Source: Dimorphilus gyrociliatus
Lineage: Eukaryota > Animalia > Annelida
NCBI GenBank assembly: GCA_904063045.1
Contig: CAJFCJ010000013.1
Location: 186,001-250,000 of the forward strand
Reading direction: 5' to 3'
DNA length: 64,000 nucleotides
Shown one piece after another: positions 35,501-44,345 of the stretch (its first letter is position 1; each line of letters opens with the position of its first letter). Under the pieces are notes generated by a model, which ran no database searches, was not told the DNA's origin, and saw nothing but the letters and a program-made list of their open reading frames with translations. Made by a program: the position numbers and the translations under genes.

Positions 35501-36162
35501 TTATCCCAAGAGGATAATAAGAACTATAGCTATAAGTGTCCCTTTTGTCTATATGTTTGGTCAAATATATTCCTCTGTTTATTTCTTTCTTTTTTCTCTC
35601 TCTCTCTCTCTCTTTTCAGCGATATGATTTTATAATTGAACATTGATATATAGCTTTACAAAGGTATCACTTTTTAATCGTTCGGAATTACATATTTAAT
35701 AAGTATAATAATAAAGGATTGATCTGTTTATATAAACGACTATAATCGAATATAATCTTTTCGATATTTTCGAGTTATTGATATTTTTTACCTTGCTTTA
35801 TTTTTCTTTATATTATTAATTATGCTATATTTTAAATATTGCAAATGTAAAGACTAAACTATATAAAACTTTCACTTTTTATAGAACCAGATGTTGGAGC
35901 CATGATGAAAAGAGCATCAAAAGCTTTAAAGGAATTTGGCGATTTACTTTTTCCATCCGATTATACTCCGGGAGCTAGGAAGAGGGGTGGACCACCAGCT
36001 AAACGACCTAAAGTAGATCCAGAAGAAATGGCTCGGAATGGAGCTTTGGGTAAACTAACAGTAGCTATTCTAAAAGAAATTTGCGCCGAAGTGAATGTTA
36101 AGCCTAAAGGAACAAAGAAAGCTGATATTATTGACGCTTTAAACAAGCATTTCGGAGTTTAA
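32511..36162 (+). CDS. XRCC6: Ku70 (X-ray repair cross-complementing 6), multi-exon
   Basis: vWA start DGLILLIDCSKAMF, core LLGFKP...HVRPAQFIYPDE, PRFVALVPQ|EEERDEQGVQQVPSGFHAIFLPFSDDFR, and a C-terminal SAP domain LGKLTVAILKEIC...KKADII. Confidence 0.95.
33097..33190. repeat. (TTCA)n/(TTTA)n tetranucleotide repeat in a Ku70 intron
   Basis: Degenerate ATTC/ATTT array. Confidence 0.85.
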
Positions 36163-36259
36163 CGTGACTATAGAGGCAAATTATTTACAAGTTCTATCTA
36201 TTTTCTACCTAACAAAGCGTTAAACAGTAATAAATGTATTTAAAAAATGCTTTGGGAAA

Positions 36260-37744
36260 TCAACCCTCTTCTTCCTCGTCGTAATTTTCGAACGCATCAT
36301 CACAATCGTCGATTTTAGCATCTTGATATTGTTGGTACTCTGATATTAGATCTGTTATATTCGAATAGGCTTCGTCAAACTCCATTTCATCCATCCCTTC
36401 ACCTGTGTACCAATGAAGAAATGCCTTTCGATTGAACATTGTTTTGAATTGATCAGCTATTCTCCTGAACATTTCCTGTATGGCTGTACTATTGCCAATA
36501 AAGGTCACTGACATTTTTAGACCTTTTGGCGGTATGTCGCAAACTGCTGTTTTCACGTTGTTTGGTATCCATTCGACAAAATAGGGGCTATTTTTGTTTT
36601 GGATATTTAACATCTGTTCGTCGACCTCTTTTATCGATACTCTCCCACGGAACATGGCTGCAACTGTTAAATATTTACCATTTCGTGGGTCGCACGCGGC
36701 CATCATGTTCCTTCCGTCGAACATCTGTTGAGTAAGCTCTTGAACTGTCAGGGCGGTATAATGCTCCTTTCCTCTAGCGGTTAGGGGTGCAAAGCCAGTA
36801 ATAAAGAAGTGTAACCGAGGAAAAGGTACCATGTTCACTGCCAATTTTCTTAGGTCGGCATTCAGTTGGCCAGGGAATCTAAGACAAGTTGTTACACCCG
36901 ACATTGTAGATGATACGAGATGATTCAGATCGCCATAGGTGGGATTCTGAAGTTTTAAGGTTCTATTGCAAATATCGTATAGCGCCTCGTTATCTATGCA
37001 ATATGTTTCGTCGGTATTCTCTAACAATTGATGTATGGATAAAGTAGAATTGTATGCTTCGGTAACGGTATCCGAAACTTTTGGCGAAGGAAGAACTGAA
37101 AATGTATTCATTATTCTGTCGGGATACTCTTCCCTAACTTTTGAAATTAGAAGAGTCCCCAATCCGGATCCAGTTCCCCCTCCTAAAGATTGACAAAGTT
37201 GGAAGCCCTGTAAACAATCGCAGACTTCCGCCTCTTTTCGAACAGCATCCATAATAGGTTCGATCAGTTCGGCTCCCTCTGTATAATGACCCTTTGCCCA
37301 ATTGTTTCCAGCTCCACTTTGACCATTGATAAAGTTATCCGGTCGGAACAAACCACCGTATTTGCTGGATCTGATAACATTTAAAGTTCCCGGTTCTAAA
37401 TCAACCAGAATTGCTCTCGGTACATAAAGTCCACCTAAAATGTTTTGTAATGTCTTTATTATTTCGCTCTAATTTTTAATTAATAAGCTAAAGTAATAAT
37501 TACCCGAAACTTCATGATAGTAGACGTTTGTTCTCTCTAATTGATAATCGGATTGTCCACGAAACTTTCCATCCGCCTCTATACCGTGTTCTTCCGAAAT
37601 AACTTCCCAAAACTGAGGTAATAAAGACAATCGCTCGCTTTATTTAAACTATCGCCTTACACCTATTCGCTAATGTAAGAAGTTCACCTTAGATCCTATT
37701 TGATTACCGCATTGACCTGCTTGCAAATGAATAATCTCTCGCAT
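36260..37744 (-). CDS. TUBB: Beta-tubulin, divergent isotype, three exons
   Basis: [38 protein letters not shown] and [17 protein letters not shown] are present. The acidic tail ends EEEEG. Confidence 0.95.
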
Positions 37745-38377
37745 ATTCAGACAAACACAAACTCCTCTCTAGAAAACTTTGAAGAAATGACAAAAGTCCG
37801 AATAAAATCAGACAAAGAGAAGAACAGTGTAAGTTTACACATTGTCGTATTCAGTTACCTATAGCTAGATCTCAAAAAGACAGAGAGAGAGAGACAGAGA
37901 GAGACAGAGAGAGACAGAGAGGAGAGAAGAAGAGAGGAATACAAAGGAAATGTTGAGAGACAGAAAAAGAAAGACCTAAAACTTGCGATTGGATCCTACG
38001 ACAAAATTATTTTGTACTATCTATCTATAATTCTAACACCTATTTTTCTTTTTAATCTAGATCACTTACGTATGTTGTCTGTCTTTTTTTGGTTAAAAGT
38101 GTAAATGTTCCTTTTTTTGTATTGTTTTCCTGGTTTGAAGGTTAAACGACAAATAATGCATTTTTAAAAAGAAAAATAGCTTTTACAAAATTTAAAATTA
38201 AATCTCTATAGATAAAGTACTTTTTAAAAATAAAATCATCGAAATAAATTAAGATCTAACGTCGAGCTGACTAAAAACCGAGACACGAAAGCCATTTAGA
38301 TTTTATATGATATTTTTTACTCTTAACCCTTAAATATCAAGAAGAGCAATCACTCACAATCAAATAAACTTTGTAAC

Positions 38378-39652
38378 TTAAATAAGACGTAAACGGACAC
38401 CTTCAGCCAACATCTTCCAAGTGACATTCTGGACGATTTCGACGTCGCAACTAACCGAGTAAGCTATCGGTTTCTTGTAAAAATACTGAATGTTAGTGCA
38501 TTCAGAAGTCAACTGGCGTTGAAAGACAGCCGCCATAATTTTCATCGCATCCAAAAGTTCTTCCTCCGTATAACCAGTCCATTTTTCCCAAGCAGTAGTC
38601 CATATTCCAGAACCGAGAATACGGTTCGACAAACAAACAGCAGCAGCCGCAGCCAAAGATGGCTTCAAAGACGCTCCACGCTCGCAAAGTACGCAAATAT
38701 CTAACAAATAAGCCGTTAAAAATTGTTGATTCTTACTCGGAGTTTCGGTGGTCTGGTACCAAGCGCTGGTAAAGCAGTACGGGGTTGGTGGCCAAAGGTC
38801 AAAATTAAGTTTTCGAACAATAAGCTTTTCCATATCGTAAATTTGCTCTTTGGTATACGCGTCATCGGTATACCTAATCAATCTCTTAACAGAAGGCACA
38901 TAACGTTCATTCAACTTAGCCGCTAACAAAATAGAAGTAGATGAAACAAGCTGGATGAGAGCCAAGTCAGTCGGAAAGACAGACAAGGTTCTATCCATAA
39001 TATTAACAGCAATATGAAACGATTGACGTTGCATCTTTTCAGAGCGAATAACAGCATGCATCCAATCAACCACAACTTGCCTGGTTCTTTCGGTGATGTC
39101 AACGCAACACTTTAAAAAATCAGGTTTAACTGCTAAATCTCTTTCGCGATCTTTCAAATGACGTAAAACTTGAACAACATAATTACTGCAATCATAAATA
39201 TGAACGCCAGGAGGGGGTTGAAGTTGAACATCAACGCAAATCCCTTGATCGTCATCTGGCTCTTTCTCTTGTATGACTTTAGTCGTTACAATGTCTTCGT
39301 CATCGGTAACCTCAGCTTGTTCTTCCTTCTTAGCGGTCGCTCCTTTATCAGAGCGTCTCTTAACAGGAGGACTTTTCGGTCTCTTACTTTTTCTACTTCT
39401 TAAAAACGGTGGTAAACGAACTCGTTTCTTCTTCCTTCCATCTCCATTGGTAACGTCGGCAAATGGCTTTCGCTTTTCTAATACTTTAGCCGCCCTTGAA
39501 TCACTTAAAACGGCGTCAAACGATGGCAGCTTGTCGGACAATTCTACGAGGGCGTTCCTTCTCCTTGAACCGGACGCTTCGACCCTGTGTAACTTGTCCT
39601 CAAACAAACTTAGAGTATCGTTCGTGTTAAACCTCCGCTTATTCTTCAACAT
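38378..39652 (-). CDS. Intronless A/B-type cyclin (cyclin B3-like by D-box; tentative)
   Basis: Cyclin box RQVVVDWM...FHIAVNIMDR...LAAKLNE...DMEKLIVRKLNFDL. D-box-like RNALVELSD and RKPFADVTN. The first in-frame ATG is at 39652. Confidence 0.8.
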   Translation of the reverse strand: MLKNKRRFNTNDTLSLFEDKLHRVEASGSRRRNALVELSDKLPSFDAVLSDSRAAKVLEKRKPFADVTNGDGRKKKRVRLPPFLRSRKSKRPKSPPVKRRSDKGATAKKEEQAEVTDDEDIVTTKVIQEKEPDDDQGICVDVQLQPPPGVHIYDCSNYVVQVLRHLKDRERDLAVKPDFLKCCVDITERTRQVVVDWMHAVIRSEKMQRQSFHIAVNIMDRTLSVFPTDLALIQLVSSTSILLAAKLNERYVPSVKRLIRYTDDAYTKEQIYDMEKLIVRKLNFDLWPPTPYCFTSAWYQTTETPSKNQQFLTAYLLDICVLCERGASLKPSLAAAAAVCLSNRILGSGIWTTAWEKWTGYTEEELLDAMKIMAAVFQRQLTSECTNIQYFYKKPIAYSVSCDVEIVQNVTWKMLAEGVRLRLI

Positions 39653-39929
39653 CTCGACGTTTAACCCGGGCGGGATTGACGAAGAGACTAGCGAAAACAC
39701 GCGCCTTATATGCTGTCGGTGATTGTGCTCGCAAAATAGAGTATTTATTAATTACAAGCTCAATAAAACTTCAGTACTGTCAACATTGTTACACATTTTT
39801 TATATGACCTCTACAAATTAATCATCAGTTTTCAATGTCAAATGTGAAAAAAATTGGATTATCTTCCCTAGAAAGATCCTCATCTCTTCAATTTTGTCAA
39901 GCCTAATGTATGTTCATCATATCTAAACG

Positions 39930-42033
39930 CTAGAGATCATACATTTTAACATCTACCGGCGGTACATTCTTTTTTCCTGAATACGGTGGGGGAGGAGTGA
40001 TCATTACAGGTCCAACAGCATTCGAGGAAGGTCCCGGAGAACCTCCACCACTACCTATGCGTTGTATTCTTGTGCCCCTTGAGCAGCATTTCAAACAAAG
40101 CACGATAACAAAGTCCAAAAACAGTTCGAAAAATTCCAGTATGGTTAACACGGAACAACCCAAGTATAGACCCAATACTCCTCCAATATCGGATAAGAAT
40201 TGTATTGGAGAGTATTTCGGTTCCTCCTCGATACTTTCAAAGTTGAATTCCGTATAAAATATTGATACTTTAAGGAAATTTCTACTGGGCTTGGTTGTGT
40301 CCGAATCATTGATGATTTTCTTCGTGCCATTATTCAATTCTTGTAAATCTTTGTACAAAGCCTTCTTATGTTTGTCAGAGGGCCATAAATTTGAGGATAC
40401 TATAGGTCTAAAGGTGTTTTCTGAGCATTTATTTGGGCAACTACAACTTAACTCTCCATTAGAATAGTCTGTTTCAACTTTCTCTTTGCAAGCAACAGTC
40501 GTATCATTCGTAGAATCGCATGCCGTCTTATTTAGACCTGGCCAAGTGTTCCACGCTTCATTTAAAGCTTGTCCAGTCAATGGTATCTGAGGGTCGGCGC
40601 ATTTACACCTTTTTATCGTCCAGGACTGAAGACATGTCTTATAACAGGCTGTTGTGCTATACTTGACGTCATAGTGTTCCTCATAAACATTTTTATCTTT
40701 ATTCAAACTACTAGTATCAACGCAATCTCCGTAGACTCCACCTTGTCGTTTCAATTTTATCATACTTATCCCTATACTCGTTGATTGACCAGGGCTGACT
40801 GATATTCCTTCATCCTCGGGAAAAGCCATTTTGGTTTGATTATGAATAACCACCCGTACACCAGCAGATTCGGCAAGATCACCAATATAATCGTCTTGCT
40901 CTATATTTAGGACGAGTGTTAAACCATATTGTGGGCCAGGTTTATAGGATTTTTCGACGGCCAGTGATCCCCATCCAGAGTTGAAAATATAACAATTTCC
41001 ATGTATGTTATTATAAAAGTGAACGAAATCTGAAGTATTACAAACATATCCAGCATATTCACAACTTAAGAGCATGTCTTCAAGTTGATGACCCATAGCA
41101 GTCTTAGCCGAAGTAGGAATATCAGCTAAAATAGTTGTAATTCTCTTCTTTAGTTCAAAGCCTTGGTTTGTCACTTTTCCGTCTTCTCTAGGTCTAGGCT
41201 TTACACCAAGTTGTTCCGGTTTTGGTTCTGTTTTTTAAAGAAATTTTATATTTTTCGGATATAGAATGGTACAAAATCTAACTTGTACTAGGACCAGGGG
41301 GACCACCAGGACCACCAGGACCTCCAGGACCTCCAGGAGCACCAGGAGCACCAGGGCTAGACGGACCGGCTGGAGAACCAGGACCAGCTGGACCTGCAGG
41401 ACTACCGGGACTGGCTGGACCAACAGCGCCTGGTGCTGGAGCAGGAGCAGGAGCAGGAACAGGACCAGCTCGTGCTATTTATATTCAAATGGTATTTAAT
41501 AATAGCATTATAATTGATTAAAGTGTATTAAGTCTTACCAGATCTCTTTCGACGTTTTTTAGAAGTAGTTGTTTCGTCTATACTATCCGTTGCTTCCAAT
41601 AATATTTTAATATCATCACTGCGACTAACTTCTTTCTCCTTGATTGGATTTATATTGCACAAGGTAATAGCAGGAAAATTTAACTCCGGTTTGTGATCGA
41701 TTTTTACGTTTACATCTACTCCAAAAGAAGCGTAATCTTTTGCCAAGTCTTGAATGTTATAAGCAAGAATTCCTGCCATACCCAAACTAAATATCAGCCA
41801 TATAGCTTTCTTAATATATCCTATAAAAAGAAAAAGTTATTGTATCTAAATCAGAGTATTATTAAAATATTATTACCCCTCGCAAGGTTAACGTGAGGTA
41901 TTCCGTGGCAAGTTGTTTTATTAACAAACCCTTTAAATACACTGGAAACAGGTCTCTCCGACATTGGAGATTTTTCATATTCCTCACTTGTTACTGAATC
42001 GTACATTAGCGGTGAATTATCTCGATTGTCCAT
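39930..42033 (-). CDS. DEG/ENaC/ASIC-family sodium channel subunit, four exons (42033-about 41877, about 41820-41539, 41474-41283, 41227-39930)
   Basis: HG motif TTCHGIP, TM1 then [28 protein letters not shown], a Cys-rich thumb domain and TM2 [21 protein letters not shown]. Confidence 0.92.
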
Positions 42034-42675
42034 TTTTGTATATTTCTAGTCTATCTTTCTTCTAAGTTAACTGATCTTTTAGAGATTGAAAATGAAATAT
42101 AATGCAATTTATGGTTGAAGGTAGTAGTCTCGATCCGTCTAAAAATTTTCTTAAAATGCCTCAACAGCAAAAGAAGTCTAGTTATTTAGAATATAAAGTT
42201 GTAACTAATAAATAGTAATAAATAATTCAAATTTAAGATTTCTATGACACTGCAGGGTTTAGGTCTATGATACATTGTGAATGGTTTTAAGTCTGCCTTA
42301 AAGGAAGGTTATTTATCTCAAAGATTCAATTTGATTTCCTATTTTAGTCTTATACGTTGTTATACAATAATACTATTTTACGTCGATTTATTGACAAATA
42401 CGATGATCGCTGTGATTGGTCACTGTCACTAATGAATCATATCTACTATTGAATTGAATCGAAACGCAAAAATATTTTTATTATAAAATTAGTCGTTTTG
42501 ACAGCAGTAAATATTATTGACCGGGTGGGGTATAGATATTTCAAAATCCGAATAACGATCAAAGTCTTTTACATTTTGAAATATTTAATCAAGTGTTCTT
42601 GTCCACTAAAGTAACAGTAAAGTAGGTGGCTAATCCTGTTGTCAATTCGATTGCTTTCAAACAGAAATCTCCTTT

Positions 42676-44345
42676 TTAAGTAAATAGCAACCAATTAGCC
42701 GGATTCGAAATTAGGATTTGATTGATTGCGTCCCGAGAGATATCTCTTACAAGCATTTTTGGCACAATATTCTCAAGAATATGGCAAAAGCCGTGACCTC
42801 CATATTTTTTCTGAAAAAGCAAATTAGATATTCAATTACATCATCTCTTCCATTAAGGAAACTTTTAAGGGATAAGCTCACCAGTCTATGAAGGGTATGA
42901 ATATCTTGAGCCACAACAATCTTATCTGCAAATCCATCATCAACTAGCCTCTTTATGTAAGCCACCCTCTGCGAGTCTGAAAGAAAATCAATAGTTTCAT
43001 CGAGAGGATAGTTGATGACCTCAACTCCAAACAAGTCATATTCCAGATAGCATGTTGTATCCAATAGATCCATTAATGTACAATAATCTTGTACAGTTCG
43101 ATCTATATGGGAAATAACCACCTTATCGATATTGCATCCAGCTTCCGACAAAATTCTGATAATCTCCATTGGCGCTCTATGATTTCTACCTGGATGAATA
43201 GATACTCCACACCCTAAATCCGCCTGGGCGATGGCTGCTCCTTTCAGAACTTTTCTCTCTGCGTCTAAAATGTAAAGCAACTATTATTAACTAAAGGTTA
43301 CATTTTAAGCAAGATTAACAAGCTCTTAAGTTATTTATTCTCTATTACCAGTCAACGGCCAAGAACAACCTATCTCCCCGATTAGTCCACATTTCACACC
43401 ATCGTAACCAACAAGTACTTCCTCCTTAATTGACTCTGCGATGTCTTCGACCGACATACCAATCATTTCAGGCGGATGAGCACTATCGACATAGTAACCA
43501 GCCCCTGCAACTACTTTTACGCCGGTTTCCTCACTGATTTTTTTCACTGCCTGTATATCACGTTTTAAACCTTTCGTTGTACATTCAACAACTGCCGAAC
43601 CTCCAAATTTCTAAGAATAAAAAAAAAACTATTAGGAAATTCGAATACTACAATTATAAAATAATTTTACCTTGAAGTCCATTAAATCGGCTTTAACTGC
43701 TTCAACATCAAACAACTTCAGATTCGGTATGTGTTGCCATCTATTAATATTTGTCAGATTTTTAACATAAATAAATAAATTACAGTTTCAGTGAAAAATT
43801 ACATACGGATTTCTAGATATCCAACCGTAATTTTCCAAAGTCATTGGAATATGAGAGTTTTCTGTCTCTTCAAGTAGCATAGGATATTCCATATAGAGAT
43901 GTTCATGAGCCAGCGTTATTCCCAGGGTAGTCGGTTCGATCAAACCGGTGACTGGAAATAAGACATAAAATATATTTGCTTTTCTATTTTATGACAAGCG
44001 TGCTATCTTTGAAAAGTATATAACAACGGAATGGGTTAATGAGCTGCAAAAAAAAAATGGAAGACAAAAAAGGCCCATTCGCCGCCGGGAAAGAAAGGGA
44101 AATCTGATAAGATGACACCAGACCTTAATTATCAAAAGAGTGACTTTTATAGCTTAATCTGACTTCTTAATAAAGATGCAACATTGTAATTAACAAATAT
44201 CAATCTAGAGGAAACATACAACTGGTTTCGAGACAGATGATATAACGTTACGGTTTATAGATTTATTACTAATAAAAATTGAGAAATTTGGATTGTATTA
44301 TTTATTCTTACCTGTTTGTATCTTTGTACTAAGAGAATTGTCCAT
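42676..44345 (-). CDS. PTER: Phosphotriesterase-related protein (amidohydrolase), multi-exon
   Basis: [59 protein letters not shown] and [18 protein letters not shown] are present. The stop is at 42676-42678. Confidence 0.92.

Follow-up and report, generated by a model that had tools for sequence, protein, structure and literature searches.

The GC-rich stretch described here lies in the window, by which we mean the whole 64-kb stretch of DNA of the miniature annelid Dimorphilus gyrociliatus which was analysed, and is likely to be a genuine lineage-specific coding exon, named exon C, which would add a disordered spacer to the finger loop of an ENaC-like channel, the collagen-like reading of its opposite strand being a by-product. 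That exon C is a real coding exon, whatever its product may do, appears highly probable. The original prediction had proposed a symmetric phase-1 exon of 192 nucleotides at positions 41283-41474, placed directly after a furin-type site in the ectodomain of a channel and encoding a flexible Gly/Pro tract, and had offered as one explanation that an inverted fragment of a collagen gene had been exonised. The description of the exon could be confirmed, the collagen origin could not.

Host gene and anatomy of exon C

By its predicted translation the host of exon C is a compact minus-strand gene of four exons for a trimeric sodium channel of the ENaC/degenerin type (Table 1). The hallmarks of the DEG/ENaC family are present in the exon translations and in their alignments to ENaC chains, i.e. 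two transmembrane segments, the HG motif, the sequence FPAxTxCN following the first transmembrane segment, and a cysteine-rich ectodomain. The exons were searched one by one. In this way exon B yielded 49.7 bits with the Pfam profile ASC (PF00858, cut-off 23.6 bits) for profile positions 20-104, and exon D yielded 234 bits (E 4.6e-69) for profile positions 130-455. The gap from 104 to 130 in the profile falls exactly at exon C. Among solved structures, those of human ENaC are closest to exon D (beta with E 8e-52, alpha, and gamma); FaNaC and ASIC rank clearly lower. The nearest named relatives retrieved by a protein word search with exon D come from a nemertean and an annelid, and the best paralogue within the same genome is only 38% identical. 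At 14 paralogue loci of the genome, a search of about 1.5 kb around the core match revealed no P/G/A exon like exon C. Neighbours of the channel gene in the window are genes for a phosphotriesterase-related protein (PTE), a cyclin, and a beta-tubulin.

Table 1. Positions in the window of the channel gene parts, of the repeats inside exon C, and of the antisense reading.
Feature	Positions	Strand	Description
Exon A	41877-42033	-	157 nt; start ATG, N-terminal cytoplasmic part, HG motif; ends in phase 1, then GTAATA
Intron A-B	41821-41876	-	56 nt
Exon B	41539-41820	-	282 nt; TM1, FPAITLCN, first finger helix, KKRRKR-S at end; phase-1 donor G/GTAAGA
Intron B-C	41475-41538	-	64 nt; GC 19%; GTAAGA...ATAG
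Exon C	41283-41474	-	192 nt; GC 65%; phase 1 at both ends
Intron C-D	41228-41282	-	55 nt; GC 22%; GTTAGA...ACAG
Exon D	39930-41227	-	1298 nt; remaining ectodomain, TM2, C-terminus with PPPPY motif
6-nt repeat	41438-41468	-	5.2 copies; GGAGCA on plus, (Pro-Ala)n on minus; common to the exon of the relative (TRF, alignment)
9-nt repeat	41290-41402	-	12.6 copies at 72% matches; reads (Pro-Gly/Ala-Gly/Ala/Ser)n (TRF)
Antisense Gly-X-Y reading	41291-41425	+	15 triplets; judged a noncoding by-product

Exon C is bounded by an AG acceptor (upstream flank ATAAATAG) and a GT donor (downstream flank GTTAGA), and stop codons directly beyond both splice sites close its open frame. Its symmetry results from the adjoining exons, as exon B ends with KKRRKRS plus one base followed by GTAAGA and exon D opens with the two bases which complete the codon, and this puts both ends of exon C in phase 1. 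The encoded peptide has 63 residues, namely 22 prolines, 19 glycines, 12 alanines, six serines, two valines, one arginine, and one threonine, bordered by split codons for alanine at the start and lysine at the end. This is the composition of a disordered, flexible tract, as had been proposed. It begins two residues past KKRRKR in the finger loop, which agrees with the location claimed for it behind a furin-type site. The exon had been noted to be absent from the mechanical list of open reading frames; the reason is that its P/G/A frame contains neither ATG nor GTG nor TTG.

All three introns of the channel gene are in phase 1 and have a GC content of 16-22%. The coding length amounts to 1929 nt with exon C and to 1737 nt without it, both divisible by three. 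The donor GTTAGA of exon C carries an unusual T at position +3 and is weaker than the other donors of the gene. As skipping of the exon is frame-neutral and its donor weak, alternative or rare use is conceivable.

Repeats inside exon C and the plus-strand reading

Two tandem arrays with units of six and nine nucleotides occur inside exon C (Table 1), the latter with a core at 41300-41355 of 6.2 copies at 93% matches (TRF). The 9-nt array coincides with a register in which proline recurs through 15 triplets, and the 6-nt array adjoins it. In 20,000 shuffles of the exon C residues the longest Pro register was 10 triplets, so the period of three exceeds what is expected from composition. The third base varies in five of 14 Pro-register codons and the first two bases in none of 28 positions (Fisher p = 0.002), a result which separates coding from noncoding sequence only and does not decide on the strand, the frames on both strands sharing their wobble positions. 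Exon C is assigned to the minus strand because of splice sites, phases, and gene context. The open frame alone proves little, repeats of the (CCAGCA)n type being open in all frames. Replication slippage of the 6- and 9-nt units is probably what makes the tract evolve fast. The units gained or lost would be Pro-Ala for the shorter repeat and Pro-Gly-Gly, Pro-Gly-Ala, or Pro-Ala-Gly for the longer one, and frame, composition, and splice phases would be retained throughout.

The 15 uninterrupted Gly-X-Y triplets which had been described on the plus strand at 41291-41425 could be reproduced, and they are the sole run of at least eight such triplets in the whole 64-kb window. The caveat that had been attached to them, that wobble positions are common to the two frames, that Gly and Pro change places, and that an x-Pro-x repeat automatically yields Gly-x-x on the other strand, proved to be exactly right. 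Read from minus to plus, Pro (CC) becomes Gly (GG), Gly (GG) becomes Pro (CC), and Ala (GC) stays Ala (GC), while Ser (TC) is turned into Asp/Glu (GA), Ser (AG) into Leu (CT), and Val (GT) into Thr (AC). By the complementarity of CCN and GGN, a Pro-x-x repeat composed of P, G, A, and S must therefore read as Gly-X-Y with P, A, L, D, and E in antisense, and it is the 9-nt Pro-register repeat on the minus strand which causes the plus-strand reading. The "perfect collagen" of the plus strand is neither a gene nor the relic of a gene.

Capture and exonisation of an inverted collagen gene fragment by the channel gene can hardly be the origin of exon C. What could be quoted for it, besides the uninterrupted triplets themselves, is an E value of 1.4e-5 with the Pfam profile Collagen (PF01391) and a 23-mer of the 9-nt repeat shared, with two mismatches, with one collagen gene. 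The score behind this E value, however, is 25.2 bits and below the cut-off of 27.2, against 30-45 bits for true collagen stretches of the genome, and the single other place in the genome where the 23-mer occurs at up to two mismatches, a real collagen gene, is what is expected for the coding of GPPGPP. When the 192 nucleotides were searched against the whole 77.9-Mb genome with a method that skips simple repeats, only the exon itself was matched. In the proposed nucleotide comparison with the genome's collagen genes, the best blastn-short match to 13 collagen loci was 25 nt long with 34.2 bits and stayed in the range of triplet-shuffled controls (mean 30.5, maximum 36.2), so that in these 13 loci no DNA similarity beyond the controls was found. 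Codon usage did not discriminate between the strands, collagens and ordinary genes using GGA/GGT and CCA/CCT about equally. The residues L, D, and E of the plus reading, counted as "collagen-typical", are simply the antisense of four serine codons, and the overall composition is unlike that of the genome's collagens: Pro makes up 38% of the plus reading, which contains two charged residues and lacks Gln, whereas real collagen runs have 13% Pro, about 19% D+E+K+R, and 6% Gln. Finally, the orthologous exon of a related species described below encodes (Pro-Ala)n, and its antisense reads (Gly-Ala)n without a Gly-X-Y run of at least four triplets in any frame. This argues decisively both against capture and against the collagen reading as such. 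A small collagen-like gene or exon coded by the plus strand and nested antisense in the channel gene deserves practically no credence. An open plus frame does extend from 41282 to 41518, and AG and GT dinucleotides occur on this strand, yet a stop codon is located at 41279-41281, no start codon precedes the repeat, and plus-strand partner exons, a signal peptide, or non-collagenous domains were not seen. Moreover, 39930-42033 is filled by the minus-strand channel gene, and the Gly-X-Y reading is not conserved in the relative.

A collagen-like triple helix formed by the sense strand products of three subunits was also considered and rejected, with only six Gly-X-Y triplets in register, which are absent from the orthologue. 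Exon C thus has 15 antisense and six sense triplets in common with the triple-helix repeat of PF01391 and differs from it in the noncoding nature of the antisense reading, in score, in composition, and in the lack of the pattern in the orthologue.

The orthologous exon and the question of exon or intron

In contigs from public reads, a protein word search with exon D retrieved a gene of 73-75% protein identity. As the open reading frame is 73% identical, the gene order PTE-ASC-cyclin-tubulin is the same, and the best paralogue reaches only 38%, this gene is the orthologue in a related species. The relative is represented by four genomic contigs which still contain the introns, and every one of them breaks inside a (CCAGCA)n repeat; exon C of the relative is split there across two contigs and is seen at its ends, not at full length.

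On the upstream side, exon B of the relative ends with KKRRKRS plus one base (phase 1), followed by GTAAGT and an intron of 57 nt. Exon C then starts with (A)CT CCC GTG CCT GCT..., resulting in a PVPAPAPAP start common to both species. The five differences in this shared 5' end are all at third codon positions. Beyond the break, the downstream contigs read PAPAPA...PGPAPAPGPAPVPGPAPAPGPASTPGSK plus one base up to the donor GTAAAT, and a 54-nt intron (GTAAAT...TTAG) leads to exon D; exon C of the relative accordingly ends with PGPAPAPGPASTPGSK in phase 1. It mostly encodes (Pro-Ala)n. The orthologous exon A is also present in the contigs. Both junctions, both phases, and the short flanking introns are kept in the relative, and the sequences of these introns cannot be aligned between the two species.

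We infer the inclusion of exon C in the mRNA from one observation, its conservation in the relative. Were the stretch instead a GC-rich mini- or microsatellite inside a single intron of 311 nt from exon B to exon D, it would never be translated. In frame splicing from B to D, the tandem repeat nature of the stretch, and its weak donor GTTAGA fit such an intron, which we nevertheless consider quite unlikely. The repeat is found at the same place in the relative despite unalignable flanking introns, and there it has AG and GT in the right phase as well as the PVPAPAPAP start with changes at third positions only; likewise, variation within the Pro-register codons of the window is confined to wobble positions. 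The GC content of 65% is set between introns of 19-22%. The median intron of Dimorphilus gyrociliatus has 66 bp, and splicing is adapted to short introns (PMC7854359). With 64 and 55 nt the two flanking introns are of typical size, and an intron of 311 nt would be about five times the genome median. Exon C might also be a true cassette exon, retained in the mRNA of certain tissues or stages and left out elsewhere, which would yield channels with and without the spacer. The phase-1 symmetry, the length divisible by three, and the weak donor in the window would suit a cassette; nothing beyond this frame compatibility favours skipping, however, and the donor GTAAAT of the relative is an ordinary one. 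In addition, where the introns of a genome are very short, splicing mostly proceeds by intron definition, a mode that favours the constitutive inclusion of exons. Regulated skipping of exon C therefore seems rather unlikely to us.

The polybasic motif and a possible role of the tract

The end of exon B, KKRRKR/S, fits the convertase consensus R-X-K/R-R. Exon B aligns with residues 49-139 of human gamma-ENaC in such a way that KKRR is placed on RKRR 135-138, the proximal furin site of gamma-ENaC (PMC8791634, Table 1). All residues of KKRRKRS are identical in the relative though five of the seven codons differ synonymously, which shows the motif to be under purifying selection. In the alignment, the relative, Lineus (REKR), and Lamellibrachia (KKKKRKRKKR) each have a polybasic motif at these same columns; two paralogues of this genome also carry one, NKRRRKRS (KRRRKR) and KSKRRKKRE (KSKRRKKR). 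The stretch which follows the motif differs from case to case. In the window it consists of P/G/A and in the relative of (Pro-Ala)n, the Lamellibrachia gene model has a C-type lectin domain with a mucin-like, Thr-rich stretch, and in Lineus the stretch is short; of the two paralogues, one has an acidic and Tyr-rich stretch and the other a Ser/Thr-rich one. These features suggest that a motif for cleavage or recognition has been conserved and that the spacer behind it is permissive, disordered, and fast-evolving.

After the gap, the ENaC alignments start again only with residue 32 of the exon D query (39930-41234, minus strand), which corresponds to residue 223 of beta, 234 of gamma, and 258 of alpha. 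Exon C together with about 30 further residues therefore occupies the place of the GRIP region of ENaC. As in the GRIP of vertebrate ENaC alpha and gamma, which belong to the same family, the tract follows the first helix of the finger and comes before the helix that leads up to the conserved GH..L..C block. There are clear differences, however. Furin sites flank the inhibitory tract in ENaC, whereas the annelid channel has a single polybasic site; the annelid tract is of pure low complexity, with no similarity to the inhibitory peptides of ENaC; and the beta-strands of GRIP are not recognisable in the annelid channel, the solved-structure alignments skipping this region. Between exon C and the conserved core no second R-X-K/R-R motif was found. 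An LKKR directly precedes the residues which align with ENaC beta from 223 onwards, and because of this position at the start of the aligned core it is not the distal site; in gamma-ENaC the distal cleavage site lies about 50 residues upstream of where the aligned core starts. Activation of ENaC needs two sites around the tract, and GRIP is held to be unique to ENaC in the literature (PMC8791634). As the second, distal site is absent, an inhibitory mechanism of the ENaC type is disfavoured for the annelid channel, and a role of the tract as a sequence-specific inhibitory peptide is unlikely in view of its low complexity and its turnover between species.

Exon C is best read as encoding a flexible spacer, or tether, which follows a convertase site. 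In the secretory pathway, cleavage behind the polybasic motif would leave the P/G/A tract as a flexible new N-terminal tail of the C-terminal fragment; without cleavage the tract would form a long slack loop. Cut or uncut, the Pro/Gly/Ala/Ser spacer of about 64 residues, presumably intrinsically disordered and extended in a peripheral finger loop of the ectodomain, would act as an entropic spacer or tether, neither as a folded module nor as a sequence-specific peptide. That the channel is cut, that the tract is disordered, and that it serves as a spacer or tether are all predictions.

Among known systems, Pro-Ala-rich or Pro-Ala-Ser linkers occur in the E2 linkers of 2-oxo-acid dehydrogenases, in the hinge of OmpA, and in synthetic "PAS" polypeptides. 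They likewise consist of almost nothing but P, A, S, and G, contain (Pro-Ala)n runs, and let one expect an extended, hydrated, non-folding chain. The annelid tract differs from them by its location in an extracellular loop of an ion channel, by having a small exon of its own, and by the additional Gly-rich 9-nt repeat. Elastomeric repeat proteins rich in Pro and Gly, such as flagelliform silk (GPGGX), elastin (VPGVG), and resilin, can also be compared. Like these, exon C is dominated by Pro plus Gly (65%) and has PGG and GPGG motifs. It differs in encoding only 63 residues, without the hydrophobic residues for elastin coacervation and without cross-linking motifs, and its orthologue swaps most of the tract for (Pro-Ala)n.

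Exon C would then be a real but ordinary low-complexity exon in the finger loop of a DEG/ENaC channel. Its antisense "perfect collagen" is a textbook-type effect of codon complementarity and calls for caution when both strands of Pro/Gly-rich repeats are scanned. What remains is modest, a quickly evolving exon for a disordered spacer in an insertion-tolerant loop of the channel. The conserved polybasic motif preceding it is a more interesting lead than the exon itself; this motif is under purifying selection and recurs at the same alignment columns in the annelid relative, a tubeworm, a ribbon worm, and two paralogues. It is a speculative and on balance improbable thought that spiralian ENaC-like channels are processed at a finger-loop convertase site equivalent to the furin site of gamma-ENaC, with the lineage-variable tract serving as a tether or gating modulator unmasked by cleavage. 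If this were true, protease control of DEG/ENaC gating would not be an invention restricted to ENaC and linked to tetrapods, and protease regulation of the finger domain could be older or convergent.

Gene neighbourhood and the orthologous exon

The DEG/ENaC channel gene lies in a compact cluster of five genes spanning about 8 kb, where it is preceded by a Ku70-like SAP domain gene, a beta-tubulin and a cyclin and followed by a phosphotriesterase-related protein. The same order is kept in two contigs of the related species (L001 and L033). All four of the contigs obtained for this species from public reads stop within a (CCAGCA)n repeat of the exon orthologous to exon C, the Pro/Gly/Ala spacer of the finger loop, and this repeat exceeds the k-mer of the assembler.

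Coordinates of the features in the window and in contigs of the related species
Feature	Location	Strand
Gene cluster around the channel	35902-43943	
Furin-type polybasic motif, channel	41539-41562	minus
Furin-type polybasic motif, orthologue	L033:5166-5190	
Contig ends in (CCAGCA)n repeat, orthologous exon	L001:1-60, L031:1-60, L032:1270-1308, L033:5260-5294	
PPPPY, channel C-terminus	39930-40010	minus

The polybasic motif of the finger loop

A furin-type polybasic motif occupies one and the same finger-loop position in the channel and its orthologue (both KKRRKR), in two of the channel's paralogues in this genome (loci L019 and L020; KRRRKR and KSKRRKKR), and in a tubeworm and a ribbon-worm protein (P0003, KKKKRKRKKR; P0002, REKR). 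Its counterpart in the alignment with human gamma-ENaC is the proximal furin site, RKRR. Such tracts have been regarded as specific to ENaC (PMC8791634).

In P0003, a hypothetical protein of 732 amino acids from the annelid Lamellibrachia satsuma, the loop that holds exon C in the window channel contains a C-type lectin domain (PF00059) followed or preceded by an extended threonine-rich, mucin-like stretch, both lying after the polybasic motif and before the conserved core. Either this protein is a channel that binds matrix or glycans, or its gene model is a fusion; the C-terminus of the model is truncated.

The C-terminal PPPPY

In ENaC subunits a PY motif binds ligases of the Nedd4 family. 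The PPPPY at the C-terminus of the channel, which is also present in the related species (P0001), is a PY-type motif resembling it; in a weak second alignment stretch it lies opposite the PPPNY region of ENaC beta.
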